26,214 nucleotides of DNA. Source: Macrostomum lignano. Lineage: Eukaryota. The DNA is taken from contig NIVC01005106.1 of the NCBI GenBank assembly GCA_002269645.1, forward strand, positions 1 to 26,214, read 5' to 3'. A model generated the notes under the pieces. The model worked only from the letters and a program-made list of their open reading frames with translations. It searched no databases and had not been told where the DNA came from. The translations under genes and the position numbers were made by a program. The stretch's first letter is position 1. Each line of letters starts with the position of its first letter. Of this stretch, positions 2,881-26,214 are shown one piece after another.

Positions 2881-3274
2881 GTTAAAAGAGCTGCCAACCG
2901 CGCCTTCCGACAACGGAGTGGCCAAATTAAAACATTGAAACTCATTAAAACTGTCTCGCTCTGTTAGCACTCGTGTGCCACTCTTTTAAAGTCTTAACCT
3001 CGGTGTCGTCCAAGTTGAGCCGAACGTCAGAGACAGTAACATCCAAGTACGACAGCGCTGGCGTACTCCTGTACTTTTGCTCGTCATATTGACAAAATGT
3101 CGCCAATATCTAATTGACAGCTTAATTCGGAGGACGTACTCCAAAACTTACAGGAGACAGAACCACAGGACTGGTCAACCAAAGTCACCGTTACGTTTAG
3201 TCACTTCCCAGCCTTCGTAATGACTTCTTCAGGCCACTGCAGTTCGTCGATTTATTCCAATAAAATCGACCATT
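2881..3274 (-). pseudogene. Decayed RPA70 DBD-B-like exon (exon 2 of paralog A)
   Basis: Acceptor ttttattAG|a atg gtc gat has the same phase as ctatcAG|a atc gtc gat at 19683. Manual translation MVDFIGI/IDELQWPEEVITKAGK*LNVTVTLVDQSCGSVSCKFWSTSS..IGDILSI*RAKVQEYASAVVLGC/SDVRLNLDDTEVKTLKEW aligns with IVDVLGVIDARQPSEEVRTRAGKK..VTLVDRTFGSVSCTFWGSSS..IGDVLSIRRAKVQEYSGSVTLGC..SDVKCNSDDGEARVLADW at 19684-19981. It has stops and frameshifts. A candidate GTAAGT donor begins at 2880. Confidence 0.85.
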
Positions 3275-3330
3275 CTAATAAAAGGCAAACGAAGAGCAGG
3301 CAATTTTAAAAGGTTTTTTAAAGTTGAAGA

Positions 3331-3340
3331 CGTAAGATTA
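3331..3340. repeat. Target-site duplication of the LINE (left copy)
   Basis: CGTAAGATTA at 3331-3340 is identical to 9241-9250 and directly abuts the (CTTA)3 tail. Confidence 0.9.
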
Positions 3341-3432
3341 CTTACTTACTTAGCTGCAGGGCTGTCCCGGAGGGGACACAGCGGGAAGGCGCGGGCGCCC
3401 ATTCCGCTAGTCCCTGAACGGCCGACGCGTCG

Positions 3433-6400
3433 CTATGGACGGAGGGTTGGCGCCGCCCAGGGAGGTCCCCCAGTGTCGCCAACAGCTATGGTGCTCTCTG
3501 GAAAGGAGAGTTCAGCCCTGCGGGTGGCCCGAAGGTAGCGCATGAGCTGATTAAAGTTTTCGGGTTTGCACGCTTCAGTAATAGATGTGTGTGGCCCGAG
3601 GTAAGTGAGTCTGGCCCGCGTGAAGGCGGGACAGATGCTGACGAAATGCTCAGCGGTTTCGTCACCTGAGTTGCAGAAACTACAGGTGGCGTTGGTGGCG
3701 TTGCCCTGCAGGTACTGGTGCCTGGAGAAGCAGCCGTGACCAGAGAGGGTCATGGTGGCAGCCCGGATGTCTCTGCGCGAGAGGCGCAAGAGGAGCTTCC
3801 GGAGCTGGTGAGAGGGCTGAGGGACAGCGCCTCTGGATTTCCTGCAGTTCGTGCGGTTCGCCCAAGTCGAGCGGTGCTGAGTCCTGATCCACGCTTTGAT
3901 GCGCGAGTCGATGACACAGCCAGGAATCGGGACAAGAGGTTCGGGCCGAGAGAGGAGCCGGAGGCACCAACTTTTGCAAGGGTGTCAGCCAACTCATTTC
4001 CTCGGATCCCCACATGCCCCGGAACCCACTTAAGGGTAATTTTGTTGGCGGAACCCAACACATTGAGGAGTTTAATACAGTCAAGGACTGTAGCAGAGTT
4101 GGTGCTGCAGCCACTGATGGCGTGCAAGGCAGCTTGGCTGTCCGAATGGAAAATGATGTTCTTACCAGTAACGCCAGTGGCGAGAAGCTCTGCAGTGCAG
4201 GAGCTGATGGCCAGAACTTCATTTTGGAAAACACTGGAGTTGACCCCAGTGTATTGAGCGTGGGTAGCGATGACCCTCCCGTTCAGAAAGATTCCAACAC
4301 CAAAGCCGGTGTTGGCTGACTGCTTAGAACCGTCGGTGTAGCAATGAAGCTCACCAGGGTTCCAATGGTCATTGATGTTATCGCGCGAGTCGATAGCTAC
4401 GGAGTAGCGCTGTCTCAGGTTGAGCGTTGAGGCAATGCCATCGGTGAAGACGCGATTGGCCTGACACTCATTGAGAAAGTTGAGGCACAGATCGCTATGC
4501 GGGACAAGGTTCCGCTTAGCAGGTGCTCTCATGTAAATGAATTTGACGCCGGCATCAATTAGACGCCGCGTCGTTCTAGCCGCCTCACCCCTGATGAAGA
4601 GGTCAAGAGGCGGAAGATTAAGGAAGGCCCCCATGCCAGCAAAGGGCGTGGACCTGGTGGCGTTGCAGATGAGCCTACACGCTCTGCCTTGGATCGTGTT
4701 GAGCAGGTCTGCATGGCTTTTGACCTGGGTAGCGCTAACCCAGACAACAGAGGCGTACGTAATGGCAGGTCTAACTACGGAAGTATAGATCCACCAAAGC
4801 CGCTTTGGGATAGACCCCAAGAAGTGCCAAGTGCTCGTCGGAGCTGGGCCAGGATGGCTGAGGCACGCTTGGCTTTTGCTTTCACGTGGGAGGACCAGTT
4901 GAGCCGGTGGTCAAGTATGACCCCGAGACATCTGGTCTGGTGCGCGAAGGCAATATCTCTGCCGTAGAGCTGCAGAGGACGTATGTTCCAGCGTAGTCTG
5001 CTGGTAAACATAATGGCAACGGTTTTGGGCTCAGAGAGTTCCAGACCATTGTCATTGGCCCAGGATTCTGCTTTGTGGATAAAGCTCTGCCTCAGATCCC
5101 TGAGCGTGCTGGGAGACGGTCCTGCCACAATGGCCGTGACGTCATCAGCATACCCGACTTTGAAGACGGGTCGGGTCGGGAGTCACTCAAAAGAGCGTCC
5201 ATGACCAGGTTCCAGAGCATCGGGGTGAGGACTCCGCCTTGGGGTCCACCCTTACAGACTCTGGTGGAGGCAGTTTGCCCAAGAAGTTGGGCAGTGACCG
5301 TACGGTTGGAGATCATGTACATGATCCACCGTATGAGGGTAGCATGAGCTTTGCGATTTTGAAGGGCTCTCTGAAACGCTTCAAAGATAACGTTGTCGAA
5401 GGCGCCAACAATGTCAAGAAAGAGAACCAGAGCGTAACCGTCACCCAGTACCGCCCTTTCAATCTTCTCGACAATCGCATGCAGGGCGCTGTCAGTCGAC
5501 CTCCCGGTACGGAAGGCGTGCTGATTATTGCTGAGGGGCATCGCTGTCAGCTCGCAGGACAGCAGCCGCCAGAGAATAAGCCTCTCAGTGAGCTTAAGCA
5601 TTGCTGACGTTAAGCTAATAGGCCGGAAGGCTTTGACGCTTTGGTAGTCACCCTTCCCAGGTTTGGGAATAAAGACTACCCGAGCTTCAGTCCAGCATTT
5701 GGGAACGTATCCCAGCTGGATAGAGGCCCACATAAGATTGCGGGTGAGTCTCAGGAACGAGGGTATCTTGGCTGCTTCACGAAGGAGAACAGGGTAGATA
5801 CCATCAGGTCCAGGAGATTTGAAGGGTTTGAAGGTTCTGACCGCACGAGCGATTAGGTCTTCAGTGACAATGCCCGCCGCTAGGGTGGCTCCATCCATCG
5901 AATGGTTGGGCTCCGGTCTAGCAGTAGGTACCCTCGGGAAGAATGTGCTAAGCATATGCTGAAGCACTTCTTCAGGGTCTTTAGTAAGAGAGCCATCATC
6001 TTTTTTGATCATGGCTAATTTGGACATTTTGTCCATTGTAAGGGCCTTGACAAGCCTAGAAGTAGGTCTGTCTTGATCCAATTCATTGCAGAATTGGCGC
6101 CACTTACATTCCTTGACCTTGCGCACTTCAGATTTGAAATTGCGGGAGGCTTGCCGGAAAAGCTCCATGTCCTCCGGGTTTCCGGTCTTCATGGCATGGC
6201 GATGAAGGCTTTTGGCCTTCCGCCTGAGTTTCCCCAGCTCCGGGTTCCACCACGGCGCCGAGGTCTTGCCTTTGTAGGCGCGAGCAGGACAAGCCGCTTC
6301 GTAGGCTTCAATAATGCAACCTGTCAGCGTCTCAGCCATATGATCCACATCCTCGCAGGTCTCAATCGGACGTAAGTCCGTGAGTTCCTGCAGGTGCAGA

Positions 6401-7168
6401 TCAAGGGCAGCCTTGTAGGCCGCCCAATCAGTGTTGCGGATATTGCGTCTCCAAGTGATCGGAGACTGGGTTTTAGTGTCCGCGATGTTAAAGGCGATAA
6501 AGCAGTGGTCAGACAGGGAGGGCTCCTCAGACCAGACTCTCCACTCCTCAACTCTGTCAAAGAGTCTTGGGGTAACGAGTGTGGCGTCGAGGACCTCGGT
6601 CCATCTGCCATTATTAAAGGTAGGAGTGCTGCCGCGGTTGCAGAGCATGAGGTTTGTGTTAGAGATGAGGGCCAGAAGCTTCTCTCCTCTAGTGTTGGTA
6701 TCTTTGCTGCCCCAGTGCTTGTGGTGCGCGTTGAGGTCGCCCCCTAAGCACAGCTCAGCGTTCTGGGACTCGCAGTACTGCGCGAGGCGCAGTAAACTCT
6801 CAGGAGCAGGGTCTCTGTCGCCTGGGATATAAACCGAGGCAACAAGACACGTACGCGGAGAGAAATGATTAGATTGGATGACACAAAGGTCTCCATCAGA
6901 GAGATCAGTCCTCAGCCAAGCCTGGAGATGGCTAGCAGCGAGGATAGCCGCTCTAGGGCGGCTGTTCCCCGGGCCACACACAAAAATCAGAGTAGCCAGA
7001 GGGAATGTTGGGCAACTTACCGTTGCGCATCCAGGGTTCCTGGATCAGGATGAGGCCTGGCCTGTACAGCTCAGCAATCTTCATCAGATTTACTGACGCA
7101 GATACGCAATGCTGTAAATTAATTTGCAGACAGAATGTCGCTCCTTTGGCAGCGTGGAGCTTAGTCAT
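3433..7168 (-). CDS. LINE ORF2 polyprotein (APE endonuclease, reverse transcriptase, RNase H, C-terminal CCHC finger), interrupted by 4 frameshifts
   Basis: APE: QINLQH, LIQEPW, GGDLNAHH..WGS, SDH. RT: KSPGPDGI, FRPISLTS, FLDIVGAFDNV, GPQGGVLTPMLWNL, YADD (about 5140-5151, in the frame of ORF 4775-5128), LGVILD. RNase H: YTDGSK, NEVLAI, SDSQAAL, WVPGHVGIRGNELAD. Finger: CSFCNSGDETAEHFVSIC. Frameshifts lie near 6975, 5170, 4815 and 3942. Confidence 0.93.
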
Positions 7169-7207
7169 ACTGTATTAAATGCAATTTCTGGCTAGAGCCC
7201 AGGGCCA

Positions 7208-8723
7208 TCAAGGAGACTTGGACAACAGATCGTCCTCGTCCCAGGCCGCTGGGGCTTGACTGGGAGATGGGAGTTGGTCGACGTCCATGGCCTCCTCACC
7301 CCCACCGCCCCCCCCCCCAGCAGAGTCCTCAGGCTCCGATGACAGGATGGAGGAAGCTTCCTCACCTGCATCTTTACCTTCAGACCCCACCAGGGTGGCC
7401 GAGGAGAGCTCGGATTCCGAAGACCCGGCCTCGTCCTCAACTCCTTCTCCCTTCTCCGACTGGCAGGTTTGGTTCCCGGGGCTTGGCCGGAGCCGTTACC
7501 GCGGTCGCCGAACTGCTGCTAGCAGAGGGGCGAGATGCAGCTTTGGCTTTGGGATCGGCTTGCGCCTTTCCTTGGGCCTTAGACTGCGCCCCGCTCTTGC
7601 CGGAGATGCCGGGGTTGGCAGTAGCCTTCCCTTTGGCAGACTTTCCTCGGCGCATCTTGAGCTTGAGGGCACCCAGCTGGAAAGAGGATCCATTAGGGTA
7701 CCGACTCGCCCAAGTGCTGGAAAGGCCGAGGACAATTGAGTTGCCCGTCTCCCCCCTGCGGACTTTGCGGTGATACACCAGTCCACTAGCAGGGAGGTCG
7801 GGGTTCAGACGCAGTAGGACCCGGCGAATAACGTCTGGTCCAGCTGCGGTGCTCTTAGCAGGGACGAAAACCACATAGGGTATCGTCTTTGGACGCTGGC
7901 CCTCGCGAAGAAAAAGAGCTCCGCCAAGGTCAGCATCTAAGGAGACCGTCGGTAGCCGCTGGAGCAGCTGCCGAGCGTCCTCCTCGCTGCTAGGAGCAAT
8001 AAGAACGAATGTGCTTCGCAGCACCATCCGCTCAATGCCGATGGAGATTCCCTCCTCGACAGTCAGCTCAATCAGATAGGAGTCAACAGCTCTCCACACT
8101 TTTTGAAGCTGATCAGTGGTCCAGTCCTGGTCGCGACCTTGGATGATCACTCCCGGGATTTTGGCCTTGGCCTTCGCCGCAAAGGTAGCTCCCGAAGGAA
8201 CCTCCTTGTTGGCAGTGGCCATTTGTTGCGCCGTGGTTTCGGCCTCAGCAGCCGCAGCAGCATCTCCAGGGAGCGCCGCCGCTGAACTACCGGAGCTTCC
8301 ACCGGCCGGCCCGTCTGGTTGCCTTGGGACGCCAGTCGCTTCAGCATCCATGGTGGACGCCGCCGCTTTGGCCCCCGCAGCTCCCTTCTTGGCCTGCCTT
8401 TTGGCGCGTTGTTTAGCGCGTTTGCGCTCAAGCCGAGCCCGCTGAGCTTCATCGGATCTGCCAGATTTGGCCGGTCCTTTAGGCTCAGAGCTCGCGGTTC
8501 CCTTAGATCCACCAGCGGAGCTGGCAGGTCTTTGGGTATTATGAGTTTGGTAGCTCTGGTCGGATCTGCCAGCAGAGCCAGCCGGTCCTTCCTTTGCCAC
8601 AGTTGAATCAGTCGGTTGGGATCTGCCAGCAGGGCCGGCCGGTCCTTCGGACTGAGGTTGGGGTTTAGAAGGGTCCCCGTCCCTAGAATTAGTTTGGTTA
8701 TCCATAGGCGGCTCGAAGGCCAT
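7208..8723 (-). CDS. LINE ORF1 (gag-like, cysteine-free, resembles DUF4780-type ORF1), one frameshift near 7450
   Basis: First ATG at 8723 (the track start 8780 is GTG). It has a basic/low-complexity N-terminus and a core PKTIPYVVFVP..VLLRLNPDLP. Removing one G near 7450 (gaagggagaa) joins it to the acidic tail GEGEGVEDEAGSSES..WDEDDLLSKSP*, ending at 7208, 40 bp before the ORF2 ATG. DUF4780 resemblance is from memory and unverified. Confidence 0.8.
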
Positions 8724-9240
8724 GATAAAAGGTTGGTGGGCTACCCTCAAAGGGGCGCGGTACCCACCCGGCCGCTCCACCTGACCGGGCAGTAGGCCAA
8801 TAGCACCCTCAAGGCTGGCCCGACACCAGGAGGGGACCGCTTGCGACCGGACTACTCCCCGGCCTTCCAGCCCATCGGCACGGTCAACACCTTAGGCATT
8901 AGAGAGTACGTTGAGCAGTACCACGGCCTGCAGGTTGGCGAGCCAGACCCGCATACCCAAATTCGGCCGAAGCCACTGGATAGGGTCGCCAGCGCCGGAG
9001 CCCAGTCTGTCCAGCAGCCCTAGGGACTGCCTTGAACACACGCGGGGACGAGTACCCTGGGTCGACTTGCGAGACAGCGTGGGGGGTCTGCGGCTGCCAG
9101 AGGCAAATAGAGGGTGCAGACCTCCCACCAGCCTTGACCTGCTGAAGATAGGGGCAGGCGTGAAGCATCGCAGACCTTAGCCCATGGGCCTAGTCTGTCT
9201 CATACTTCACTGGCATGCTGAATACGCCTTCGCGTGCTCG

Positions 9241-9250
9241 CGTAAGATTA
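9241..9250. repeat. Target-site duplication of the LINE (right copy)
   Basis: CGTAAGATTA, identical to 3331-3340. Confidence 0.9.
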
Positions 9251-9380
9251 GTAGATAGAAGTTGGTTCGTTGATATGGAGGTATAAGGTTAGTAGATAGA
9301 GGTGGGATAGTGGATGAAGAAGTAGAGTAGCAGATAGATCCAATGCAACCCACCCTTGCAGTCGCATGTTTTCAGGTTAC

Positions 9381-9785
9381 TTATAATTGCATGTAGTTGC
9401 ACGCACATTCTTTAACAATTGAAATGTCATTGATTTGACATATTGATATCTTGTAGTCGACAGAGTCATCTCCAATTGATAATTCGTGTTGTTGAATCTT
9501 GGATCGGCGTCTTATAATTATTCTGCTGGCTATGCGAACAGCATCGGAAGTACTGTAAATTTCCCAGACAGACCGCATGTCTTTGCCAAAAACGCTGAGT
9601 CGTCATCTCTGCCCAGTCGTCTACCCAGACGAATGCAAAAACTTGGCCTGGACCACTGCTTATCGTGTAGGACTTGACATCCTTCAACTCGGTTACAAGA
9701 CCAGTAACCACTGCAATTATATGGCCCAGTGTCAGGGAGCAATTGTATTCTTCGCCTTCTTGTAGGTGTTGATTGCAGACTACAT
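9381..9785 (-). pseudogene. Decayed RPA70 DBD-A-like exon (exon 1 of paralog A)
   Basis: VTGLVTELKDVKSYTISSGPGQVFAFVWVDDWAEM/VFGKDMRSVWEIYSTSDAVRI..LEMTLS/SVDYKISICQINDISIVKE aligns with VTGLVTNLKDVHTYNNNKGQGQVFSFILVDDSSEMRVSVFGKDLQAVWEVCNDAEAVRI..LEMTVSVDSKGFI at 18992-19428. It has several frameshifts, and a GT donor begins at 9380. Confidence 0.85.
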
Positions 9786-9984: not shown

Positions 9985-10320
9985 GCAAACTAAATGGCTA
10001 AGAGGACAGAACAAACTTCTTGTGTTCCTTTGTGTTCATGCTTATTAGGACTTTACTTTTTACACTAATATTTTATATCCGCATAAAATGTTCCTACATA
10101 TTAGATCCATACGTAGCGGAATGGGCGCCCGCGCCTTCCCGCTGTGTCCCCTCCGGGACAGCCCTGCAGCTAAGTCAAGTAGATCCATACGAGTGTTGAC
10201 AGGGGATTACCGGAGTCAGTTGCTCTGCAGCAAAGATGATGATCAATGATCGTCAAGCGGAATGTCGTTGGGTGATCACGGCGCGAAAAAGCACTTCGTT
10301 TATGTGCTAAGTTGCACAAA
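9985..10320 (+). pseudogene. Fragment homologous to the last intron and last exon of the RPA70-like gene
   Basis: aatcgcaaa..ttcatgctta(t/a)taggacttt..tatatcc..AG|at, then gagtgt.gac.gg.gat.accggagtcagtt..gaatgtcgtt.g.tgatcac.gcg..agcacttcgt, matches about 20258-20510. It is interrupted by the 66-bp LINE fragment. Confidence 0.8.
10114..10179 (+). mobile_element. 66-bp 5'-truncated copy of the same LINE (3' terminus only)
   Basis: tagcggaatggg..ccctgcagctaag is the exact reverse complement of 3349-3409 and is followed by a variant tail, tcaag. It is flanked by the 12-bp TSD TAGATCCATACG (10102-10113 and 10180-10191). Confidence 0.95.
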
Positions 10321-13449: not shown

Positions 13450-14035
13450 TTTGCGGGATTAAAAGGATTAAAAGGATATGGATGGGTGGGGGATTCTTTG
13501 GATATGGATGGGTGGGGGATTCTTTGGATATGAATGGGTGGGGATTCTTTCGATGGGGACTCTGTGAATGAGGGACTCTTTTAATAGGGATTCTTTTGAA
13601 GGGGATTCTTTGCATATGAGATGTTATGGATGGGCAATGCATTGGATGGGAAATTCTTCAGATAGGAGAATTCCTTGAATGGGGAATTCTTTGGATCCGG
13701 GATTCTATTAATAGGGGTTCTTTGGATGGGAGATTTTTTGATATGGATGGAGGTCGAGGATTTTTTGGATAGGGATGGATAGGGGGATTCTTCGGATCGG
13801 GGATTCTATCGATGGGGGTTCTTTGGATGGGGATTCTCTGCATGTAAGATTCTATGGATGGGCAATTCTTCAGATAGGAGAATTCCTTGAATGGGGAATT
13901 CTTCGGATCGGTGATTCTATCGATGGGAGGTTTTTTGGATGGCGGATTCTTTTCATGTGAGATTCTTTGCATCGTGGATTTTATGGGTGGTGTATTCTTT
14001 GGATGAGGGATTCTTTGTATGGGAGATTCAGTTGG
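13450..14035. repeat. Degenerate G-rich minisatellite (ggattctttggatggg-type)
   Basis: Recurrent ggggattctttggat(a/g)(t/g)ggatggg units with internal block duplications. Confidence 0.85.
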
Positions 14036-14229
14036 GTGAAATTTTATTGCGTGGGAAAACTGTGGCTGGAGTTTGGACGGAAAGCCCCAACGGGAGTTGG
14101 AATTGGCTAGCTGAGGAAATTGATCCCTAATCTTGCTGGGGTACTTTCTATCAGGGGATGCTTGCTATCGGAAGGACGCTTGCTCTTGGGGTATGCTTGC
14201 TCGGAAGAGAATTTTAAGATGTCAAGATT

Positions 14230-14629: not shown

Positions 14630-15235
14630 AATTCTATGGATTGATGATTCTTTGGATGAGGGATGCTTCTAATGGATAAATTTGGATAGGTGATTCATTG
14701 GGCAATTTCTTCGGTGGGGCATTGTTTCGATTGAGGGTTTTTTGAATGGGGGATTCTTTAGATGAATGATTCTTTAGATGGGGGTTATTTGACGGGGGTT
14801 TTTTAGATGAGAGGATTCTGGATTCTTTGGCCAATTATGCTTTTGATGGGGGATTATTTAAGGATGTGAATTATTTAGAGGGGGGATTTTTTGGAGAAGT
14901 AATTTTTTGGATATGGATGGTTAAGGTGATTATTTAGATAGGAATGGATGGGGAAATTCTTTGGATAGGGATGAATAGGAGGATTCTTGGGATAGGGATG
15001 GATGGGGGATTGTTTAGATAGGGATGGATGGGCGATTCATTAAATAGGGAATTCTACAGATAGAGGATTCCTTGAATGGGCAATTCTTCGGATCGGGGAT
15101 TCTGTCGATGGGGGGTTCTTTGTATGGGATTCTTTGGATGAGGGTTTTTTGCATGTGAGATTATTTGCATCAGGGACTTTATGGATTAGAGATTCTTTGG
15201 ATGGGGGGGGTTCAGTTGGGTGAATTTCTTTTGCG
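14630..15235. repeat. Second block of the G-rich ggattctttggatggg minisatellite
   Basis: Same motif family as 13450-14035; 15125-15294 parallels about 13945-14110. Confidence 0.8.
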
Positions 15236-15828
15236 TGGAAAAACTTTGGTAGGAGTTCTGACGGAAAGCCCCAACGGGGGTTGGAATTGGCTAGTCAAAT
15301 ATACTAAAAATCAAAACTATATGTATATATGTCAATTGGTGCCATGTAAAATAGCCGTCTTCTCGTCGTTTACGCGAATGCGTTGTCCGATTTTCTTCAA
15401 ATTTGCACCATTCGATCACAAATTTTTGCGTCTCGGTACATGCATTTTGGCTAAGAAATTGCTCGATGCTGAAGGCATTAAATATTCGAAAAACATGCTT
15501 TTTTGCAAAGGTCAAGCAAACTTTTCGACTTGAAATGCATAAGAATGCTAAGAGAAAAAATTGACTGGTTGAATTCTGATTCTGAAATAGATTGCATCAT
15601 TACTGAATTGTAACTCCGACTTGAATTGCGTCACAGTATTTAAAATGCAGTGTGGAAGCGTAGCACCAGACTTGATTTAGATTGCGTAGCACCAGACTTG
15701 ATTCAGTCAACTTTAATTTAATTGAGACTGATACTGACTTGCCTGGGAAATTGATTATGTCATAACTGCTTCGTGAGTGAGTGTTGAATTATATAGGTGC
15801 TACAATTTCATTTATAAATTCGATAAGA

Positions 15829-15890
15829 GCTAGCCTAGATGTGAACAGACTGGACTGCCAATGTCGCGACCTGGGTTCGAATCTTAGTAG
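15829..15890 (+). mobile_element. Decayed tRNA-derived (SINE-head-like) sequence
   Basis: A-box-like tagcctagatg and B-box ggttcgaatc at tRNA-like spacing; no intact cloverleaf. Confidence 0.3.
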
Positions 15891-15990
15891 AGAAATGTTT
15901 TTTTATTGAAAGCTTTTATTAAAGGACTAATTAAAGGACTAAAGGTGTCATAGTATAGAGTATAGTATAGAGTATAGTATAGTACAGGTA

Positions 15991-16377
15991 TAAACAATCA
16001 TAGAAGCGTCATGTAAAAATCATAGAAGCGTCATGAAAAATCATAGAAGCGTCATGTAAAAAATCATAGAAGCGTCATGTAAACAATCATAGAAGTGTCA
16101 TGTAAAAATCATAAAAGCGTCATGAAAAATCATAGAAGCGTCATGTAAACAATCGTAAAAGCGTCATGTAAACAATCATAGAAGCGTCATGTAAAAAATC
16201 ATAGAAGCGTCATGTAAAAATCAGAAGCATCATGTAAAAATCATAGAAGCGTCATGTAAAAATCATAGAAGCGTCATGTAAAAAATCATAGAAGCGTCAT
16301 GTAAAAAATCATAGAAGCGTCATGTAAACAATCATAGAAGCGTCAGGTAAAAATCATAGAAGCGTCATGTAAAAATC
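15991..16377. repeat. 21-22-bp tandem minisatellite (aaaaatcatagaagcgtcatgt)
   Basis: About 18 near-identical head-to-tail units with no spacers. Confidence 0.97.
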
Positions 16378-16440
16378 AATTTTCAATCAATAATTTTTGT
16401 CATTGTGATTTTTTTGTGTTTGTGATTTCAGAGCTCTACA

Positions 16441-16690
16441 GTCAGTAAACAGACAATAAAGTCTCTAAACAGACAATACAGCCTCTAAACAGACAATGCA
16501 GTCTCTAAAAAGACAATACAGCCTCTAAACACACAATACAGCCTTTAAACAGACAATACAGTCGTTTAACAGACAATACAGCCTCTAAACAGACAATACA
16601 GTCGTTTAACAGACAATACAGCCTCTAAACAGACAATAATACAGTCACTAATACAGCCTCTAAACAGACCATAAAATACAGTCAGTAAAC
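16441..16690. repeat. 20-bp satellite, short array (taaacagacaatacagcctc)
   Basis: About 12 units of the same monomer as 20755-22320. Confidence 0.95.
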
Positions 16691-17644
16691 AGATATAGTA
16701 CAGGTATAAGCAGGTCAAACCTGTATGTATAATTGGAATTTATGAAGCAGCCCTCATTGAGAGTAGGTTGACTGCATCTTAACTGGGCTAAAAGAGTTTG
16801 TGAATGGTGTATAGGAGCTGCTCTATATACCCTGTGGTTCCAGACTCTAAAAGGAGCATTTGCAGTCAAGCTCTGTAGCAGCCTTAAGCAGAGCTGAGCG
16901 ACTTAATGTTTGGTTTGAGAATGAATGTCTCTACATTTGCTTACACCGAATGCATGCAATTGAGCAGTGACGCGAGTCGGCAGGTAGTCAGGATGGCATA
17001 TACATGTGCATTTTTGTACCGCTAAAGCTATACTGGCTGCTTGTCGATGGCATCATCTGCTGAAGCGACAGTCGATCCTTTTGTAATAAATTATTACATT
17101 TTTCAATATCTGTACGAAATATTAAACTTGCTCAGCGTTAGTAGTCAGAAGCAGATCATACATATATCGTTGGAATAAATACAAGTGTTTGTTTAACTTT
17201 TGTTTCAATTTTTAAACTTCAATTTGTGGTTGTTAATAGTTTAAAATTTAATTTGCCGTTTGCTTCTTTGTTAGTTATAGCAGTTAAAGATGGATAAAAC
17301 AGTTTTTTGTACTGTGTATAATAATCGAAAAACTTATAAATGTTTAATAGTTCGGCGAATTCATTCATGCAGTTTCGTATTGTTCTACTTTCAAAGTAAG
17401 CCAGTATGAAATGGTAAGTGTGTATGTACGGTCATTCTTTGTCATGACATGCTATGGTGAGAATGAATTATACTTTGAATATTTCATGGCATTAGAATAT
17501 TCTGTTCACAAAACTTTGTACTGGTGCGCCATTCTTTCAAAAGTCCAAAAAAATAAATAAGTCTATCGCGGATTTTAATCAAAAGTCAAAAAAGTAATAT
17601 AGTTTACTAAGATATAGTTTATTTATATATATTAAAATAAATAT

Positions 17645-18218
17645 TCATTGGAAATTCATTGGCTGCGGCTGCTGTTGCTGCGGCTGCTGTTGCTGCTGCT
17701 GCGGCTGCTGCTGCTGCTGTTGCTGCTGCTGCGGCTGCTGCTGCTGCTGTTGCTGCGGCTGCTGTTGCTGCTGCTGCGGCTGCTGCTGCTGCTGTTGCTG
17801 CGGCTGCTGATGCTGCTGCTGTTGCTGCGGCTGCTCCTGTTGCTGCGGCTGCTGCGGCTGCTGCTGCTGCTGTTGCTGCTGCTGTTGCTGCTGCAGAAGG
17901 CGGGCGGCGGCCTTCATCGCGTTGCAGCTGGCTACGCGGTGGCGGCCTCCGCAGAAGAAACAAACGACTGGCAATTAAAAGAAGGGAAATTTTTGCAAAA
18001 TTTATCAGTAATAATACGAGTAGCATGAAAGTCGGTAACAGGCTACAATTAGATTAAATTTAGGACTATACTCGAATGTACTCAAAGCTGAAGATTTACA
18101 GTGTCTTAGGAAGGTACTCACTACTCTTTCCGCGTGGGCCGCTGCCGCGCTGCCAGCCGCCTCGCCTACCGCTGCCGCCTCGCCTTCTACCGCCGCCGAA
18201 TATTTGTGTAATATGCAT
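17645..18218 (-). CDS. Two-exon gene: RGG-rich N-terminus + CCHC zinc knuckle + polyQ/P tail (139 aa), copy 1
   Basis: Exon 1 (18218-18122) encodes MHITQIFGGGRRRGGSGRRGGWQRGSGPRGKS. Then comes a GTGAGT donor, a 154-bp intron and the acceptor tttcccttcttttaattgccAG. Exon 2 (17967-17645) encodes (I)VCFFCGGRHRVASCNAMKAAARLL-polyQ-PMNFQ*. Splice phases match (1/1). No expression evidence. Confidence 0.7.
17661..17895 (-). repeat. CAG/CAA/CCG trinucleotide repeat (polyQ interrupted by P)
   Basis: (gct/gtt/gcg)n on the plus strand; about 78 codons. Confidence 0.97.
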
Positions 18219-18991
18219 CTTATCTTTTTATTATTATGACTCTAAAAACGAATCAGACTATATAGGCACTGAAACTGAGGTGTAGGGGCGAATAAAATAG
18301 GGGTTATGGGTTGTGCGTCGTCGCTTCGCTGAGCCTTAGGGTGGTTTTCTGTACAAGTCTGAGGCTTCCTATTGGTCGGTTGTGCAAGCGAGGGTGTGCA
18401 GGTCGGGGCTTTAGAGCGGCGATTGGTCTACAAATTGTCTAGCGTACTGGTGGCCATGCAGCCTGACTTGAGGGTCGCCTGTTTTTCTTTCCCGGCTTAG
18501 AAGGTGCGAAAATGGCTGAACCAGTCAGCCGCGCCATACAAGTTTTGTTTGTACAGTGAAGTACATGCGACCGCGAACTCTTAAAGTATTGCCTACACTT
18601 GCTGAGTCAGTCGGTGAGAATTGTGTCACCATAAAACGAGATAGCAAACAAACAAAAGTATCAGGTGAGAAAAGTGAGGAGACCTTAGCTTACAGCAGAG
18701 GGTGCAGTGTGTGCTTTAATGCTGGGCACGGGAGTGATTGGGGTGGGTTGTGTGTCCAGCCAATTAGATTGTGTAATAAAAATAAAAATGAATGCAAAAT
18801 TGAGTACAATGTACTGGGCTGGAGGGGAGGTGGTGTTTTTTCGTGGCTACTTTTATTTCAACATATATACTTTGTGATTTGTTGAGCCTATTTTGTTGTC
18901 TTAAAGTTAAAGCTTATCATTGCTTAGAAAAAGTTTGATTGATACTTTTTATCAGTTCCTTTTTCGACTGTTGGATAATTCTTTGTGCAAA
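18219..18991. promoter_or_regulatory. Putative bidirectional promoter between the divergent genes
   Basis: 773-bp interval between the two ATGs. It has a locally GC-richer core, ATTGG at 18371, 18422 and 18737, CCAAT at 18760 and GGGGCG at 18285. Confidence 0.4.
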
Positions 18992-20563
18992 ATGGCCTCT
19001 TATTCACAGTCACCTTTGAAAAAGAAGTCGAAGAAGGATGGGATTGCAGGTCTGACAGCTGGTCAAATGCCTACGCCTGTCACTGGCCTTGTGACGAACC
19101 TGAAAGACGTTCACACGTATAATAACAACAAAGGTCAGGGCCAAGTGTTTTCGTTCATCTTGGTGGACGACTCATCTGAGATGCGAGTCAGCGTCTTCGG
19201 TAAGGACCTGCAAGCTGTCTGGGAAGTTTGCAACGATGCTGAAGCCGTTCGCATATCCGGCGGGATGGTGAAGACTGCCAAGCCAGAGTACAAGTGTACG
19301 GACAATCCACTTGAGATGACCGTTTCCGTGGATTCCAAGGGCTTCATCTAAAGAAGCAACGAAGTGCCGGTTGCTCGAGATCCAGTAATTAATTACACTA
19401 GTCAACTGCAACAGACTGGATTGGACAGGTGAGTGACTAATTGATTTAGTAGTTTTCGTCATGTATTAGTGCTCAAATATCGTGGAGTGAAAGTACATGT
19501 AATCGTGTTTTTGGGTGACAGTTAGTTTGCCTTGTGTTTGAAAATATTTATCATCGCAACACTGTACGAAGCCTGGGTTATTAGCTTCATGATGCTACTG
19601 TTAGTGTACAAATAGAAATCTAATGTGATGCTTAAGTTAGTGTGTAAATAGTTAAAAAAAGTATTGCTCCCTTTCACTATCAGAATCGTCGATGTGCTGG
19701 GAGTGATCGACGCCAGGCAACCGTCTGAAGAAGTCCGAACGCGTGCTGGGAAGAAGGTTAACGTAGCCAAAGTGACTTTGGTTGACCGAACCTTCGGCTC
19801 TGTAAGCTGCACGTTTTGGGGTTCGTCGTCAGCTCAAGTGGACAGGTGGAACATCGGCGATGTTTTGTCCATAAGAAGAGCAAAGGTGCAGGAGTATTCG
19901 GGCTCCGTCACGTTGGGATGCTCGAACTCTGACGTAAAATGCAACAGTGACGATGGTGAAGCCAGAGTCTTGGCTGACTGGTATAGGAATGCAAAGGAAG
20001 GCGATACCCGGTTTGAACCTGTGCCCGCTCCAGTGCCTACTCCAGGACTGATGAGATTGGAGACGAAAGTGTGACCACCATTCGGGAGCCTGCTGCCTTG
20101 TTTGAGTTTTATGACAAACACTCAAAGGAAATTGTGAGGGACTTCGGAAATGCCAAAAGGTGAGTGATTTTCTACAAATTTAGTTGATTATTAAATATAA
20201 TAAAGTTTGTTAGGTTACAAGGTTAGACAGGTGTTCAGTTAAGCCATTTATTTTGATAATCGCAAATTGAATAGCAAAGAGAACAGTACTTATTGTGTTG
20301 CTTTTATGTATTCATGCTTAATAGGACTTTCTTGTCACACATATTCTATATCCTTATAAATTTTTTCTTCTCGCAGATTCGATACAGACGAGTGTCGACG
20401 GGTGATGACCGGAGTCAGTTTCACCGCAGTGGAGGTGTCGACAGTCAGGATGAGTCGAGCAGAATGTCGTTCGATGATCACAGCGTACAGAACAGCACTT
20501 CGTATCAGTGAGTTGCCACAGTTGGCGCGTGCCACTTTTTTGACCCGAGCGTCTGATGGCTGA
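18992..20563 (+). pseudogene. RPA70 (RPA1)-like tandem OB-fold gene B1 with an in-frame premature TAA
   Basis: Exon 18992-19428 is DBD-A-like (KGQGQVFSFILVDDSSEMRVSVFG..LEMT) with TAA at 19349-19351 and donor ag|GTGAGT. The exon from 19684 is DBD-B-like (IVDVLGV..VTLVDRT..CTFWG..AKVQEYSG..ARVLADWY). A second donor follows 20159 and the last exon is 20377-20563. Both junctions are phase 2 and in frame. A frame change near 19981-20046 needs either a 65-bp GT-AG intron or a frameshift. Confidence 0.85.
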
Positions 20564-20754
20564 GAGTGAAATCAAAGTCGCGTAGAGTCTCAATGAACTG
20601 ATAGCCCTGAGAGAGTGCATTGAGTAAATCCTATTTACGAGGAATGTTTCATAAGTTCCTCCTTATACTCATAGGACATAAATATAACAGTACTTAAAGT
20701 AGACATTACACAATAAATACAGTCGTCTAACATAAAATGATGCAGTCCCTAAAC

Positions 20755-22320
20755 AGGAAAATACAGCCTCTAAACAGAAAATGCAGTCTCTAAACAGACA
20801 ATGCAGCCTCTAAATAGACAATACAGTCTCTAAACAGACAATGCAGCCTCTAAACAGAGAATGCAGCCTCTAAATAGACAATGCAGCCTCTAAACAGACA
20901 ATACAGCCTCTAAACAGACAATACAGCCTCTAAACAGACAATACAGCCTCTAAACAGAGAATGCAGCCTCTAAACAGACAATACAGCCTCTAAACAGACA
21001 ATACAGCCTCTAAACAGACAATACAGCCTCTAAACAGACAATACAGCCTCTAAACAGACAATACAGCCTCTAAACAGACAATACAGCCTCTAAACAGACA
21101 ATGCAGCCTCTAAACAGAGAATGCAGCCTCTAAATAGACAATACAGTCTCTAAACAGACAATACAGCCTCTAAACAGAGAATGCAGCTTCTAAATAGACA
21201 ATGCAGCCTCTAAACAGAGAATGCAGCCTCTAAATAGACAATACAGTCTCTAAACAGACAATACAGCCTCTAAACAGAGAATGCAGCCTCTAAATAGACA
21301 ATACAGTCTCTAAACAGAGAATGCAGTCTCTAAACAGACAATACAGCCTCTAAACAGACAATGCAGCCTCTAAACAGAGAATGCAGCCTCTAAATAGACA
21401 ATGCAGCCTCTAAACAGAGAATGCAGCCTCTAAATAGACAATACAGTCTCTAAACAGACAATACAGCCTCTAAACAGAGAATGCAGCTTCTAAATAGACA
21501 ATGCAGCCTCTAAACAGAGAATGCAGCCTCTAAATAGACAATACAGTCTCTAAACAGACAATACAGCCTCTAAACAGAGAATGCAGCCTCTAAATAGACA
21601 ATACAGTCTCTAAACAGACAATGCAGCCTCTAAACAGAGAATGCAGCCTCTAAATAGACAATACAGTCTCTAAACAGACAATACAGCCTCTAAACAGAGA
21701 ATGCAGCCTCTAAATAGACAATACAGTCTCTAAACAGACAATGCAGCCTCTAAACAGAGAATGCAGCCTCTAAATAGACAATGCAGCCTCTAAACAGACA
21801 ATACAGCCTCTAAACAGAGAATGCAGCCTCTAAACAGACAATACAGTCTCTAAACAGACAATACGGCCTCTAAACAGACAATACAGCCTTTAAACAGACA
21901 ATTCAGTCTCTAAACAGACAATTCAGTCTCTAAACAGACAATACAGTCTCTAAACAGAGAATGCAGCCTCTAAACAGAGAATGCAGCCTCTAAATAGACA
22001 ATACAGTCTCTAAACAGACAATGCAGCCTCTAAACAGAGAATGCAGCCTCTAAATAGACAATGCAGCCTCTAAACAGACAATACGGCCTCTAAACAGACA
22101 ATACAGCCTTTAAACAGACAATTCAGTCTCTAAACAGACAATTCAGTCTCTAAACAGACAATACAGTCTCTAAATAGGCAATACAGTCTCTAAACAGGCA
22201 ATACAGTCTCTAAATAGGCAATACAGTCTCTAAACAGACAATACAGCCTCTAAACAGACAATAAAGCCTCTAAACAGACAATACAGCCTCTAAACAGACC
22301 ATAAAGTACAGTCAGTAAAC
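20755..22320. repeat. 20-bp satellite, long array
   Basis: About 78 units of taaa(c/t)aga(c/g)aat(a/g)cag(c/t)ctc with no spacers. Confidence 0.98.
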
Positions 22321-23667
22321 AGACAATAAAGCCTCTAATACGTCAGTTTGAGGCAGGTATCTGACTTTAACTGGTTTTAAACCCCCCCCCGCGCCGGCCT
22401 GGCCTCGCTTTGGTGGGTTGGTGGGGTGCTGGTGCACTGCGTGCGTGCAGGGCTTAGCGCAGCCTCCCCCCCGCTCTGTGCTATTTAGTCACGCGTCGCG
22501 GCCGCTGAGTCGGCGTAATTTTGGCAAAATATTTTTTTCTCTTTTAAATTACAAAATCAATATATTTCGTCGCTTAAGGGGTTCGTTTTCCCTTTCTGGG
22601 CCGCGTCTGCCGGTCTTTTGTGCCACTTGCTTTTATTCTGCGTTAGTCTTTTGGGGTTTAAACAGACCATAAAATACAGCCTCTAAACAGACCATAAAAT
22701 ACAGTCAGTAAACAGAAATAGTACAGGTATAAGCAGGTCAAACATGTATGTATAATTGGAATTTATGAAGCAGCCCTCATTGAGAGTAGGTTGACTGCAT
22801 CTTAACTGGGCTAAAAGAGTTTGTGAATGGTGTATAGGAGCTGCTCTATATACCCTGTGGTTCCAGACTCTAAAAGGAGCATTTGCAGTCAAGCTCTGTA
22901 GCAGCCTTAAGCAGAGCTGAGCGACTCAATGTTTGGTTTGAGAATGAGTGTCTCTACATTTGCTTACACCGAATGCATGCAATTGAGCAGTGACGCGAGT
23001 CGGCAGGTAGTCAGGATGGCATATACATGTAAATTTTTGTACCGCTAAAGCTATACTGGCTGCTTGTCGATGGCATCATCTGCTGAAGCGACAGTCGATC
23101 CTTTTGTAATAAATTATTACATTTTTCAATATCTGTACGAAATATTAAACTTGCTCAGCGTTAGTAGTCAGAAGCAGATCATACATATATCGTTGGAATA
23201 AATACAAGTGTTTGTTTAACTTTTGTTTCAATTTTTAAACTTCAATTTGTGGTTGTTAATAGTTTAAAATTTAATTTGCCGTTTGCTTCTTTGTTAGTTA
23301 TAGCAGTTAAAGATGGATCAAACAGTTTTTTGTACTGTGTATAATAATCGAAAAACTTATAAATGTTTAATAGTTCGGCGAATTCATTCATGCAGTTTCG
23401 TATTGTTCTACTTTCAAAGTAAGCCAGTATGAAATGGTAAGTGTGTATGTACGGTCATTCTTTGTCATGACATGCTATGGTGAGAATGAATTATACTTTG
23501 AATATTTCATGGCATTAGAATATTCTGTTCACAAAACTTTGTACTGGTGCGCCATTCTTTCAAAAGTCCAAAAAAATAAATAAGTCTATCGCGGATTTTA
23601 ATCAAAAGTCAAAAAAGTAATATAGTTTACTAAGATATAGTTTATTTATATATATTAAAATAAATAT

Positions 23668-23879
23668 TCATTGGAAATTCATTGGCTGCGGCTGCTGTTG
23701 CTGCGGCTGCTGTTGCTGCTGCTGCGGCTGCTGCTGCTGCTGTTGCTGCTGCTGCGGCTGCTGCTGCTGCTGTTGCTGCGGCTGCTGTTGCTGCTGCTGC
23801 GGCTGCTGCTGCTGCTGTTGCTGCGGCTGCTGATGCTGCTGCTGTTGCTGCGGCTGCTCCTGTTGCTGCGGCTGCTGCG

Positions 23880-23916
<37 letters not shown>

Positions 23917-24241
23917 CAGAAGGCGGGCGGCGGCCTTCATCGCGTTGCAGCTGGCTACGCGGTGGCGGCCTCCGCAGAAGAAACAAACGACTGGCAATTA
24001 AAAGAAGGGAAATTTTTGCAAAATTTATCAGTAATAATACGAGTAGCATGAAAGTCGGTAACAGGCTACAATTAGATTAAATTTAGGACTATACTCGAAT
24101 GTACTCAAAGCTGAAGATTTACAGTGTCTTAGGAAGGTACTCACTACTCTTTCCGCGTGGGCCGCTGCCGCGCTGCCAGCCGCCTCGCCTACCGCTGCCG
24201 CCTCGCCTTCTACCGCCGCCGAATATTTGTGTAATATGCAT
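23668..24241 (-). CDS. RGG + zinc knuckle + polyQ gene, copy 2
   Basis: Exons 24241-24145 and 23990-23668; same predicted protein as copy 1, with one synonymous CAA/CAG change noticed. Confidence 0.7.
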
Positions 24242-25014
24242 CTTATCTTTTTATTATTATGACTCTAAAAACGAATCAGACTATATAGGCACTGAAACTG
24301 AGGTGTAGGGGCGAATAAAATAGGGGTTATGGGTTGTGCGTCGTCGCTTCGCTGAGCCTTAGGGTGGTTTTCTGTACAAGTCTGAGGCTTCCTATTGGTC
24401 GGTTGTGCAAGCGAGGGTGTGCAGGTCGGGGCTTTAGAGCGGCGATTGGTCTACAAATTGTCTAGCGTACTGGTGGCCATGCAGCCTGACTTGAGGGTCG
24501 CCTGTTTTCTTTCCCGGCTTAGAAGGTGCGAAAATGGCTGAACCAGTCAGCCGCGCCATACAAGTTTTGTTTGTACAGTGAAGTACATGCGACCGCGAAC
24601 TCTTAAAGTATTGCCTACACTTGCTGAGTCAGTCGGTGAGAATTGTGTCACCATAAAACGAGATAGCAAACAAACAAAAGTATCAGGTGAGAAAAGTGAG
24701 GAGACCTTAGCTTACAGCAGAGGGTGCAGTGTGTGCTTTAATGCTGGGCACGGGAGTGATTGGGGTGGGTTGTGTGTCCAGCCAATTAGATTGTGTAATA
24801 AAAATAAAAATGAATGCAAAATTGAGTACAATGTACTGGGCTGGAGGGAGGTGGTGTTTTTTTTTCGTGCTACTTTTATTTCAACATATATACTTTGTGA
24901 TTTGTTGAGCCTATTTTGTTGTCTTAAAGTTAAAGCTTATCATTGCTTAGAAAAAGTTTGATTGATACTTTTTATCAGTTCTTTTTCGACTGTTGGATAA
25001 TTCTTTGTGGCAAA

Positions 25015-26214
25015 ATGGCCTCTTATTCACAGTCACCTTTGAAAAAGAAGTCGAAGAAGGATGGGATTGCAGGTCTGACAGCTGGTCAAATGCCTACGCC
25101 TGTCACTGGCCTTGGTGACGAACCTGAAAGACGTTCACACGTATAATAACAACAAAGGTCAGGGCCAAGTGTTTTCGTTCATCTTGGTGGACGACTCATC
25201 TGAGATGCGAGTCAGCGTCTTCGGTAAGGACCTGCAAGCTGTCTGGGAAGTTTGCAACGATGCTGAAGCCGTTCGCATATCCGGCGGGATGGTGAAGACT
25301 GCCAAGCCAGAGTAGCAAGTGTACGGACAATCCACTTGAGATGACCGTTTCCGTGGATTCCAAGGGCTTCATCTAAAGAAGCAACGAAGTGCCGGTTGCT
25401 CGAGATCCAGTAATTAATTACACTAGTCAACTGCAACAGACTGGATTGGACAGGTGAGTGACTAATTGATTTAGTAGTTTTCGTCATGTATTAGTGCTCA
25501 AATATCGTGGAGTGAAAGTACATGTAATCGTGTTTTTGGGTGACAGTAGTTTGCCTTGTGTTTGAAAATATTTATCATCGCAACACTGTACGAAGCCTGG
25601 GTTATACTTCATGATGCTACTGTTAGTGTACAAATAGAAATCTAATGTGATGCTTAAGTTAGTGTGTAAATAGTTAAAAAAGTATTGCTCCTTTCACTAT
25701 CAGAATCGTCGATGTGCTGGGAGTGATCGACGCCAGGCAACCGTCTGAAGAAGTCCGAACGCGTGCTGGAAGAAGGTTAACGTAGCCAAAGTGACTTTGG
25801 TTGACCGAACCTTCGGCTCTGTAAGCTGCACGTTTTGGGGTTCGTCGTCAGCTCAAGTGGACAGGTGCATCGGCGATGTTTTGTCCATAAGAAGAGCAAA
25901 GGTGCAGGAGTATTCGGGCTCCGTCACGTTGGGATGCTCGAACTCTGACGTAAAAATGCAACAGTGACGATGGTGAAGCCAGAGTCTTGGCTGACTGGTA
26001 TAGGAATGCAAAGGAAGGCGATACCCGGTTTGAACCTGTGCCCGCTCCAGTGCCTACTCCAGGACTGATGAGATTGGAGACGAAAGTGTGACCACCATTC
26101 GGGAGCCTGCTGCCTTGTTTGAGTTTTATGACAAACACTCAAAGGAAATTGTGAGGACTTCGGAATGCCAAAGGTGAGTGATTTTCTACAATTTAGTTGA
26201 TTATTAAATATAAT
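25015..26214 (+). pseudogene. RPA70-like gene B2 (partial)
   Basis: ATG at 25015, the same TAA (25374-25376), donors after 25453 and 26173, acceptor at 25703. Additional small indels may be sequence errors. Confidence 0.8.

Follow-up and report, generated by a model that had tools for sequence, protein, structure and literature searches.

RPA-like proteins are a recurrent accessory domain of Helitrons, which are also known as capturers of genes; in HLE1 elements the RPA-like gene lies downstream of RepHel (PMC11417382). The recurrent accessory domains named in the main text of the same paper include no zinc knuckle. A rice Helitron with RPA only, which contains blocks of tandem repeats, has also been described (PMC4683698).

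The window analysed here, a stretch of 26,214 nucleotides of Macrostomum lignano DNA (contig NIVC01005106.1), most probably contains, from 15295 to at least its end, a non-autonomous canonical Helitron that has lost Rep/Hel and carries two accessory genes head-to-head, in a cassette duplicated in tandem. It is classed as non-autonomous because Rep/Hel is absent from the window and present in its relatives L002/L007 and L001; the assignment to the Helitrons is based on sequence features, namely the 5' end, the 5' region R that follows it and colinearity with the related locus L006. The Macrostomum elements share several traits with HLE1: the 5' TC, the 3' hairpin and CTAG, insertion between A and T (in L002) and termini in common with non-autonomous relatives. 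The HLE1 gene order is matched by L002/L007, where the RPA-like gene follows Rep/Hel on the same strand. Unlike HLE1, the window element is without Rep/Hel and has a second conserved gene (RGG/CCHC-like/polyQ), divergent from the RPA-like gene. The DHH_Mothra "mother element" of rice (PMC4683698) likewise kept its RPA-like gene, lost RepHel and contains tandem-repeat blocks, and both it and the window element are presumed to rely on an autonomous sister family. However, it belongs to a plant and not a flatworm, has no zinc-knuckle partner, and its coding cassette is not duplicated. The literature and supplements searched contain neither a description of the M. lignano family nor expression data, only Mlig-rpa3 and canonical RPA1/RPA2; the pairing of RPA-like and small zinc-knuckle proteins in Helitrons seems to constitute an accessory module that has not been described before.

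Two Helitron 3'-terminal segments precede the cassette-bearing element. The first (13474-14110, +) consists of a G-rich 16-bp minisatellite, the hairpin CCCCAACGGGAG and CTAG at 14107-14110; the second (14685-15294, +) has a G-rich minisatellite, the hairpin CCCCAACGGGGG at 15269-15280 and CTAG at 15291-15294. The former is 72.6% similar to 14749-15294, and the 3'-end motif of the latter recurs at 3' ends in L001, L002, L003/L004 and L006, so that a short GC-rich hairpin with CTRR is seen at both neighbouring ends (14110 and 15294) and at these four places. The 5' end of the cassette-bearing element, TCAAATATACTAAAAAT, and its region R (15295-15990, +) follow directly and are shared with M. 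lignano Helitrons: the TC at 15295-15296, continued by AAATATACTAAAAAT, aligns with the Helitron 5' ends of L002 and L001, and R has counterparts of 75-88% identity on the 5' side of Rep/Hel, two in L001 and one in L002, and on the 5' side of the L006 cassette. At 15294/15295 the 3' end of one Helitron thus adjoins the 5' end of the next (CTAG/TC), which masks the host insertion site in the window; CTAG/TC junctions are also found in L001 and L003/L004. Beyond R lies a 23-bp satellite (15991-16378, 17 copies), which follows R in Helitron B of L001 too. No Helitron 3'-end motif is present between 15295 and the window end, the 3' end of the element being located past it. Scans for Rfam families and tRNAs over the window gave no match.

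Further upstream are older relatives of the RPA-like gene, as the first-pass annotation had recognized. A relic with frameshifts (2957-9741, -; OB1 at 9741-9384, OB2 at 3251-2957) is interrupted by a full-length LINE (about 3338-9350, with endonuclease, RT and RNase H), and a last-exon fragment at 10182-10299 (+) is 74% identical to 20381-20503. The fragment is probably a remnant of the Helitron with 3' ends at 14110 and 15294.

The related M. lignano loci place RPA-like genes in Helitrons. In L002/L007, Helitron_like_N, PIF1 and Pif1_2B domains are followed on the same strand by the RPA-like protein P0006; the L002 Helitron is 11.3 kb long, runs from A/TC (436) to a hairpin and CTAG/T (11713), and holds both Rep/Hel and the RPA-like paralogue. 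L003/L004 retains a helicase C-terminal remnant directly upstream of its RPA-like gene, with a 3' end about 560 bp downstream. The L001 element (about 20797 to 6417, -) contains Rep/Hel, the RPA-like P0004 and a zinc-knuckle gene. Here the gene pair lies inverted with respect to Rep/Hel, which means that the loci differ in arrangement; a candidate OTU protease upstream of Rep/Hel (GDGNCFFH motif) was unconfirmed by Pfam at E<=0.001. L006 is a 14-kb element with both ends mapped, which contains the gene pair and no Rep/Hel. Besides the window, the zinc-knuckle partner stands head-to-head with the RPA-like gene at three further loci (L001, L005 and L006), two of them (L001, L006) within mapped Helitron ends and one (L001) together with Rep/Hel. 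The L002 Helitron, which is autonomous, lacks a zinc-knuckle gene; the partner is therefore not needed by every Helitron family.

Co-location of both genes in other copies, on which the first-pass annotation had staked its proposal, thus holds at four loci, while the adjacent Rep/Hel ORF for which it proposed a search is found in relatives (L002/L007 and L001) and nowhere in the 26-kb window. Of its three readings of the cassette, the one supported is that of a Helitron accessory cassette: related termini bracket the gene pair, an RPA-like paralogue lies directly behind Rep/Hel in a complete Helitron, and a Helitron 5' end is located 1.35 kb upstream of unit 1. A germline or telomere gene family fares poorly, as the window contains no telomere repeat and every locus with mappable ends (L001, L002 and L006) has the genes inside Helitron termini.

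The first copy of the RPA70 DBD-A/B-like gene occupies 18992-20511 (+), with exons at 18992-19428, 19684-20159 and 20388-20511. The initial RPA70-like OB-fold assignment was correct: the protein matches Pfam REPA_OB_2 (E=1.3e-16) and tRNA_anti-codon (E=7.7e-11), as well as human RPA70 DBD-A/B (1jmc, E=1.3e-21). In alignments to 1jmc/8rk2, the four aromatic residues by which human RPA70 stacks on ssDNA correspond to F69, Y100, W191 and Y217, which are invariant across the RPA-like family, making predicted ssDNA binding plausible. Like RPA70/RPA1 (PDB 1JMC and 4GNX; E 1e-21 to 2e-23), the protein has two tandem OB folds and all four stacking residues, but DBD-F and the zinc-ribbon DBD-C trimerisation core are absent, a short acidic Ser-rich tail being present instead; it is therefore not a canonical RPA subunit. 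Neither the window protein nor family members match Rep-A_N or Rep_fac-A_C, whereas canonical matches have both. With DBD-A/B only, it is the usual "RPA-like" gene of Helitrons. Both window copies share two lesions, a TAA in frame at 19349-19351, at a position that encodes F or Y in relatives, and a frameshift of 1 nt that lies between 20017 and 20072; for this reason, the RPA-like gene is probably dead and the element decaying. The first-pass annotation had missed the stop codon and the frameshift. An exact-ORF look-up of the window exons in public assemblies gave no match. Close homologues of the gene are all M. lignano proteins, and a profile search identifies canonical RPA70s from many eukaryotes as the nearest relatives beyond Macrostomum.

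The annotated M. lignano proteins include four or five paralogue groups of the RPA-like family, a low copy number that would fit host genes too. It is nevertheless unlikely that the pair is a lineage-specific, possibly domesticated host gene family, serving for instance in the germline or in DNA repair, that happens to lie in Helitron-rich DNA or whose RPA-like gene was captured by Helitrons. Such a family would fit the age of the paralogue groups (33-60% identity), the conservation of intron positions and of the four aromatic residues that contact ssDNA, the absence of Rep/Hel over 10-26 kb in both the window and L006, and the gene-capturing habit of Helitrons. However, the genes are inside Helitron termini wherever the ends can be mapped, a Helitron 5' region lies upstream in the same orientation in both the window and L006, the window copies carry inactivating lesions, and a canonical RPA1 exists separately in M. 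lignano (supplement of PMC5173321). A simpler version, in which a Helitron happened to lie next to one member of a host gene family, was dropped after L007 and the Helitron termini came to light.

Within the presumed Helitron, the cassette is present twice. Self-BLAST aligns 16650-20201 with 22673-26214 at 99.07% identity over 3559 columns, at an offset of 6023 bp. Unit 1 spans 16650-20748, its identity to unit 2 being demonstrated as far as 20201, the position that corresponds to the last base of unit 2 within the window; unit 2 (22673-26214), truncated at the window end, contains the partner gene at 24241-23668 (-) and the RPA-like gene from 25015 (+). Two arrays of a 20-bp minisatellite with the repeat unit CTAAACAGACAATACAGCCT accompany the units, a short one at the left edge of unit 1 (about 16446-16693, with 9.6 copies at 16446-16638) and a long one of 79 copies separating the units (20749-22338). 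A 334-bp non-satellite insert within the satellite (22339-22672) precedes unit 2 only and has no match among the sequences fetched for comparison. The self-BLAST, satellite arrays and gene models bear out the 6023-bp repeated unit with a divergent spliced gene pair and 20-bp satellite proposed at first reading; its tandem copies are real, but "amplified" was an overstatement, only two copies being visible in the window.

The units have no transposon ends at their borders, so the earlier idea of an independently mobile module gives way to an internal tandem duplication. A TIR transposon was rejected because the unit edges have no terminal inverted repeats. CTAG is absent throughout 20512-22700, between the cassette units, which consequently are not joined by the CTAG/TC junction of a head-to-tail Helitron array. 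Because no Helitron 3' end occurs before the window end and no CTAG lies between the copies, the duplication is internal to one element and was probably mediated by the minisatellite arrays. The duplicated segment would comprise the 20-bp minisatellite and 4 kb with both genes, inside the Helitron, and unequal exchange or slippage between the flanking arrays would be the most likely cause; rolling-circle read-through is unlikely, since no Helitron end lies between the units.

Fifteen single-base indels and two multi-base indels separate the units. As 13 of the 15 are homopolymer-length changes, the idea that unit 2 is the more decayed copy was rejected. Changes of this kind, clustered in the last 1.7 kb, are typical of long-read consensus error, Macrostomum genomes are polyploid and rich in repeats, and unit 2 is 99% identical to unit 1 and extends to the window end, all of which would fit an assembly artefact, either an uncollapsed haplotype or homeologue placed tandemly or an assembly path looping through the satellite. 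We consider such an artefact quite improbable, as the left contexts of the units differ: the satellite array measures 193 bp at unit 1 and 1590 bp at unit 2, the 334-bp insert is private to unit 2, and the 23-bp satellite lies upstream of unit 1 only. Eight substitutions within 16694-17885 also distinguish the units.

In each unit, the partner gene stands head-to-head with the RPA-like gene. Its first copy (17645-18218, -) encodes 139 amino acids in an RGG-rich exon 1 (18218-18122) and an exon 2 (17967-17645) containing the knuckle CFFCGGRHRVASC followed by polyQ; the 154-nt, phase-1 intron has GT/AG splice sites. A TATATAG lies ~45 nt upstream of the ATG and an AATAAA after the stop. The divergent intergenic region (18219-18991, 773 bp), with four CCAAT/ATTGG boxes, is presumed to be a bidirectional promoter. 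The RGG/CCHC-like/polyQ ORF reported at first reading is thus present, but its zinc knuckle is non-canonical: in the window, L005 and L006 the spacing is CX2CX3HX4C, one residue short of CX2CX4HX4C, and Pfam has no match for the proteins of the window and L005. The L001 partner has canonical spacing, yet its score for zf-CCHC (PF00098), 15.1 bits, is below the cut-off of 20.8, so the partner departs from that family by its spacing at three of the four loci and by its score in the window, L005 and L001. Word-index protein searches with the partner N-terminus and the L001 partner found no homologue.

A CCHC-motif scan covering 114 kb, with a chance expectation of 0.27 matches, found four, all at most 1.5 kb upstream of an RPA-like gene and on the opposite strand; a fifth motif, in L006, found after the scan, is at the same place relative to the RPA-like gene. 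The phase-1 intron, 2-3 codons ahead of the first Cys at three modelled loci and, by eye, in L006, is present at all four pair loci, and the partner proteins of the window, L006 and L005 align over the knuckle. Judged on these recurring sequence features, the partner ORF is very probably a real gene. That it is a chance ORF over low-complexity DNA (a CAG-type minisatellite) is very improbable: all frames are open over 17662-17894 and the partner has no Pfam match, database homologue or M. lignano annotation, but its architecture, intron phase and odd knuckle spacing recur beside RPA-like genes only 45-60% identical to one another.

The partner resembles CNBP-type proteins and retroelement nucleocapsid-like domains in being small, with a CCHC knuckle beside Arg/Gly- or Arg/Ser-rich low complexity, and shares with nucleocapsid-like chaperones its encoding by a mobile element. 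It differs from both in its single knuckle, with CX2CX3HX4C at three of four loci and below Pfam thresholds, and in its long polyQ, and a chaperone role is putative. Both proteins may coat or chaperone the ssDNA intermediate of rolling-circle transposition, acting in trans while autonomous relatives supply Rep/Hel, and both genes may be co-expressed from a shared promoter of about 0.8-0.9 kb. We propose only tentatively, and with more doubt than confidence, that the RPA-like and RGG/zinc-knuckle/polyQ proteins form a dedicated two-protein ssDNA-handling module of Macrostomum Helitrons, which boosts rolling-circle transposition or is required for it.

If true, such a module would explain why the pair is retained in elements without Rep/Hel, which would be semi-autonomous, and the partner would, for Helitrons, be the first accessory gene described that is both conserved and nucleic-acid-chaperone-like. 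To our knowledge, the role of Helitron RPA-like genes has never been tested by experiment. Here a second accessory gene is retained over deep divergence, elements without Rep/Hel included. For the annotation of M. lignano, the loci imply that entries named "REPA_OB_2 domain-containing protein" include transposon genes whose Rep/Hel neighbour is uncalled. The genus Macrostomum has a model species amenable to transgenesis, which makes it approachable to ask whether the two proteins bind ssDNA, bind each other and raise the rate of transposition.

The gene models bear out the first-pass description of each unit as a divergent pair, an RPA70-like gene and a small gene with RGG, zinc-knuckle and polyQ segments. 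In unit 1, the RPA-like gene has three exons on the forward strand (18992-19428, 19684-20159 and 20388-20511), and its product matches the Pfam families REPA_OB_2 (E = 1.3e-16) and tRNA_anti-codon (E = 7.7e-11), as well as the crystal construct of human RPA70 DBD-A/B, 1jmc (E = 1.3e-21). The family contains DBD-A and DBD-B only; DBD-F and the zinc-ribbon DBD-C are absent from it. F69, Y100, W191 and Y217, which align with the four ssDNA-stacking aromatic residues of human RPA70, are invariant in the family. An in-frame TAA at 19349-19351, where relatives have F or Y, interrupts the gene, as does a one-nucleotide frameshift between 20017 and 20072, a region read in one frame in an M. lignano relative. 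Both units have the stop and the frameshift in common, so the RPA-like gene of the window element is probably inactive.

Close homologues are all M. lignano entries named 'REPA_OB_2 domain-containing protein', the best being 61% identical, and identity between M. lignano contigs and non-coding segments of the window is 75-92%, which identifies M. lignano or a near relation as the origin of the window. A separate canonical RPA1 is present in this species (PMC5173321, supplement). Among 1.8 billion representative proteins searched with a profile, about a dozen matched very strongly: the Macrostomum family itself, one trematode protein and short contigs of public read sets. The next tier consists of ordinary 600-residue RPA70 from many eukaryotes. 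The gene model of the trematode protein (P0011, Calicophoron daubneyi, 4022 residues) contains 26 tandem REPA_OB_2 domains and represents either one giant poly-OB protein or RPA-like genes fused in an array.

Older RPA-like relatives were also correctly placed upstream of the cassette. The window contains a relic that a LINE divides in two, together with a fragment of a last exon. The LINE is full-length (3338-9350, reverse strand) and encodes endonuclease, reverse transcriptase and RNase H in frameshifted ORFs. A 62-nt copy of its 3' end, 100% identical and inverted, lies at 10114-10175, which explains the perfect 62-nt inverted repeat returned by the repeat finder. Downstream of the relic, a short repeat at 2400-2490 is 84% identical to positions 10706-10796 of L001 (M. 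lignano contig NIVC01004209), in the intron region of the gene for the RPA-like protein P0004; a small dispersed element is a possible explanation. Overall, the region has the look of a graveyard of transposons and not of a functioning locus.

Helitron termini were exposed by aligning the repeat R (15295-15990) from upstream of the cassette. The 5' terminus reads TC(C/A)(T/A)ATATACTAAAAAT, and the 3' terminus is a hairpin, CCCC(G/A)A(A/C)(G)GGGG, followed by 10-14 nt and CTAG. Two 3' ends are present in the window, at 14085-14110 and at 15269-15294; a G-rich 16-bp minisatellite precedes each, and after both comes a CTAG|TC junction at 15294/15295. From this junction onwards R comes first, then a 23-bp satellite (found behind R in L001 as well), then the 20-bp satellite and finally the cassette, an order colinear with L006, a locus of the closest paralogue group (M. 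lignano NIVC01000254). The L006 element is 14 kb long with both ends present and contains R, the knuckle gene, the RPA-like gene and 25-bp satellites, without the transposase gene Rep/Hel. Exact head-to-tail CTAG/TC junctions are also seen in L001 (~6417 and ~20798), L003 (~11769) and L004 (~11756); together with the two successive 3' ends in the window (14110 and 15294), they suggest that Helitrons of this family insert in tandem or bypass their terminator.

Rep/Hel does adjoin RPA-like genes elsewhere. In the 7.2-kb contig L007, ORFs matching Helitron_like_N, PIF1 and Pif1_2B precede an RPA-like gene on the same strand; L007 is 99% identical to L002, so the RPA-like protein P0006 in L002 is also encoded directly behind a full Rep/Hel. 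The L002 Helitron, a clean insertion with A|TC at 436 and CTAG|T at 11713, spans 11.28 kb and carries Rep/Hel and the RPA-like gene. Its complete Rep/Hel coding region (4200-9453) is missing from the called genes of M. lignano, and P0006 therefore appears as an isolated host gene in protein databases. On the reverse strand of L001, an element running from ~20797 to 6417 contains Rep/Hel, a 21-bp satellite, the RPA-like gene and the knuckle gene, and meets a second Helitron at the 5' end of the latter. In L003 and L004, a helicase C-terminal remnant lies immediately upstream of the RPA-like gene, with a 3' end ~560 bp downstream. Minisatellite arrays of 20-25-bp units, unrelated in sequence, lie ~0.2-1.2 kb after the RPA-like gene at four of five loci (window 20749-22338, L001 12815-13441, L003 12067-13359, L006 14022-14861).

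These observations support the window cassette being cargo of a non-autonomous Helitron that keeps an RPA-like gene and its knuckle partner. Among the three readings first proposed, the termini and the Rep/Hel-bearing relatives favour the Helitron accessory cassette, while the selfish module and the germline or telomere gene family are left without support. A host or domesticated gene family would fit the low copy number and the conserved introns and DNA-contact residues, but the genes lie within Helitron termini at every locus with mappable ends; this explanation is much less likely than Helitron cargo.

Self-comparison of the window gives 99.07% identity between 16650-20201 and 22673-26214, at an offset of 6023 bp. 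The cassette is thus duplicated as first claimed; amplification goes beyond what is seen, as unit 2 is cut by the window end and two units only are visible. Arrays of the 20-bp minisatellite CTAAACAGACAATACAGCCT lie at 16446-16638 (short) and 20749-22338 (79 copies); a 334-bp non-satellite, GC-rich insert inside this satellite (22339-22672), in front of unit 2 only, has no Rfam or tRNA match and no BLAST match among all fetched sequences. The unit edges have no terminal inverted repeats. A head-to-tail array of Helitrons is ruled out, as no 3' end separates the units. No further 3'-end motif occurs from 15294/15295 to 26214, and no CTAG in 20512-22700; the units are therefore a minisatellite-bounded tandem duplication within one element. 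The flanking arrays of the same minisatellite would be an obvious substrate for unequal exchange or slippage. Unit 2 could possibly be an assembly artefact, but the satellite contexts differ between the units, as do eight bases in 16694-17885. About 15 more single-base indels are found in unit 2; 13 of the 15 are homopolymer-length changes, and they look like long-read consensus error, not decay. Indels between the units in 24504-26189 are nearly all of this type and denser towards the window end, suggesting lower consensus quality there.

The partner ORF encodes 139 residues in two exons on the reverse strand (18218-18122 and 17967-17645), with an RGG-rich N-terminus, the motif CFFCGGRHRVASC and a long polyQ tract. 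The Cys/His motif of the proposed zinc knuckle is present, but its spacing, CX2CX3HX4C, is one residue short of the canonical CCHC, and it has no Pfam match. No homologue was detectable in a word-index protein search, and the gene is absent from the M. lignano annotation. Scanning six-frame translations of the fetched loci (114 kb at that stage) for C..C.{3,4}H.{4}C gave four matches against 0.27 expected by chance, all of them on the strand opposite to an RPA-like gene and no more than 1.5 kb upstream of it; a fifth, in the same position, was later found in L006. The linkage thus holds beyond the window, in L001, L005 (a contig from read set SRR24204725) and L006, and recurrence at four loci rules out a chance ORF. 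In the window, L005 and L006, the partner has a basic exon 1, a phase-1 intron that lies two codons ahead of the first Cys, a CX2CX3HX4C knuckle and polyQ. The L001 partner is rearranged: a PY-rich/polyQ segment precedes the same phase-1 intron, a canonical knuckle and an RS tail. At the three modelled loci, the two ATGs are 773-920 bp apart and each divergent spacer contains three to five CCAAT boxes. With only 45-60% identity among the RPA-like genes of paired loci, the pair is an old one. Just outside the Helitron 5' end of L006 (2700-3650, reverse strand), a Gly-rich ORF with GGGGR repeats is followed by an apparent intron and the canonical knuckle CYRCKVLGHVAREC; this ORF may be what the Helitron knuckle gene was derived from, or a relative of it in the host.

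RPA-like genes are recurrent Helitron accessory genes, located downstream of RepHel in canonical Helitrons; the main text of the same report, in naming the recurrent accessory domains, mentions no zinc knuckle (PMC11417382). A rice Helitron with an RPA-like gene and tandem-repeat blocks, without RepHel, has been described as semi-autonomous (PMC4683698). The window element fits the same pattern, the conserved and previously undescribed zinc-knuckle partner being its new feature. In a mechanism extrapolated from these sequences, to which we give about an even chance, the DBD-A/B protein would bind the displaced single strand of rolling-circle transposition and the Arg-rich knuckle protein, as a second such factor, would bind or chaperone single-stranded nucleic acid; a shared divergent promoter would drive both genes, and their products would work in trans, with autonomous relatives supplying Rep/Hel. 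The finding is of moderate interest for transposon biologists and of use in annotating Macrostomum genomes.
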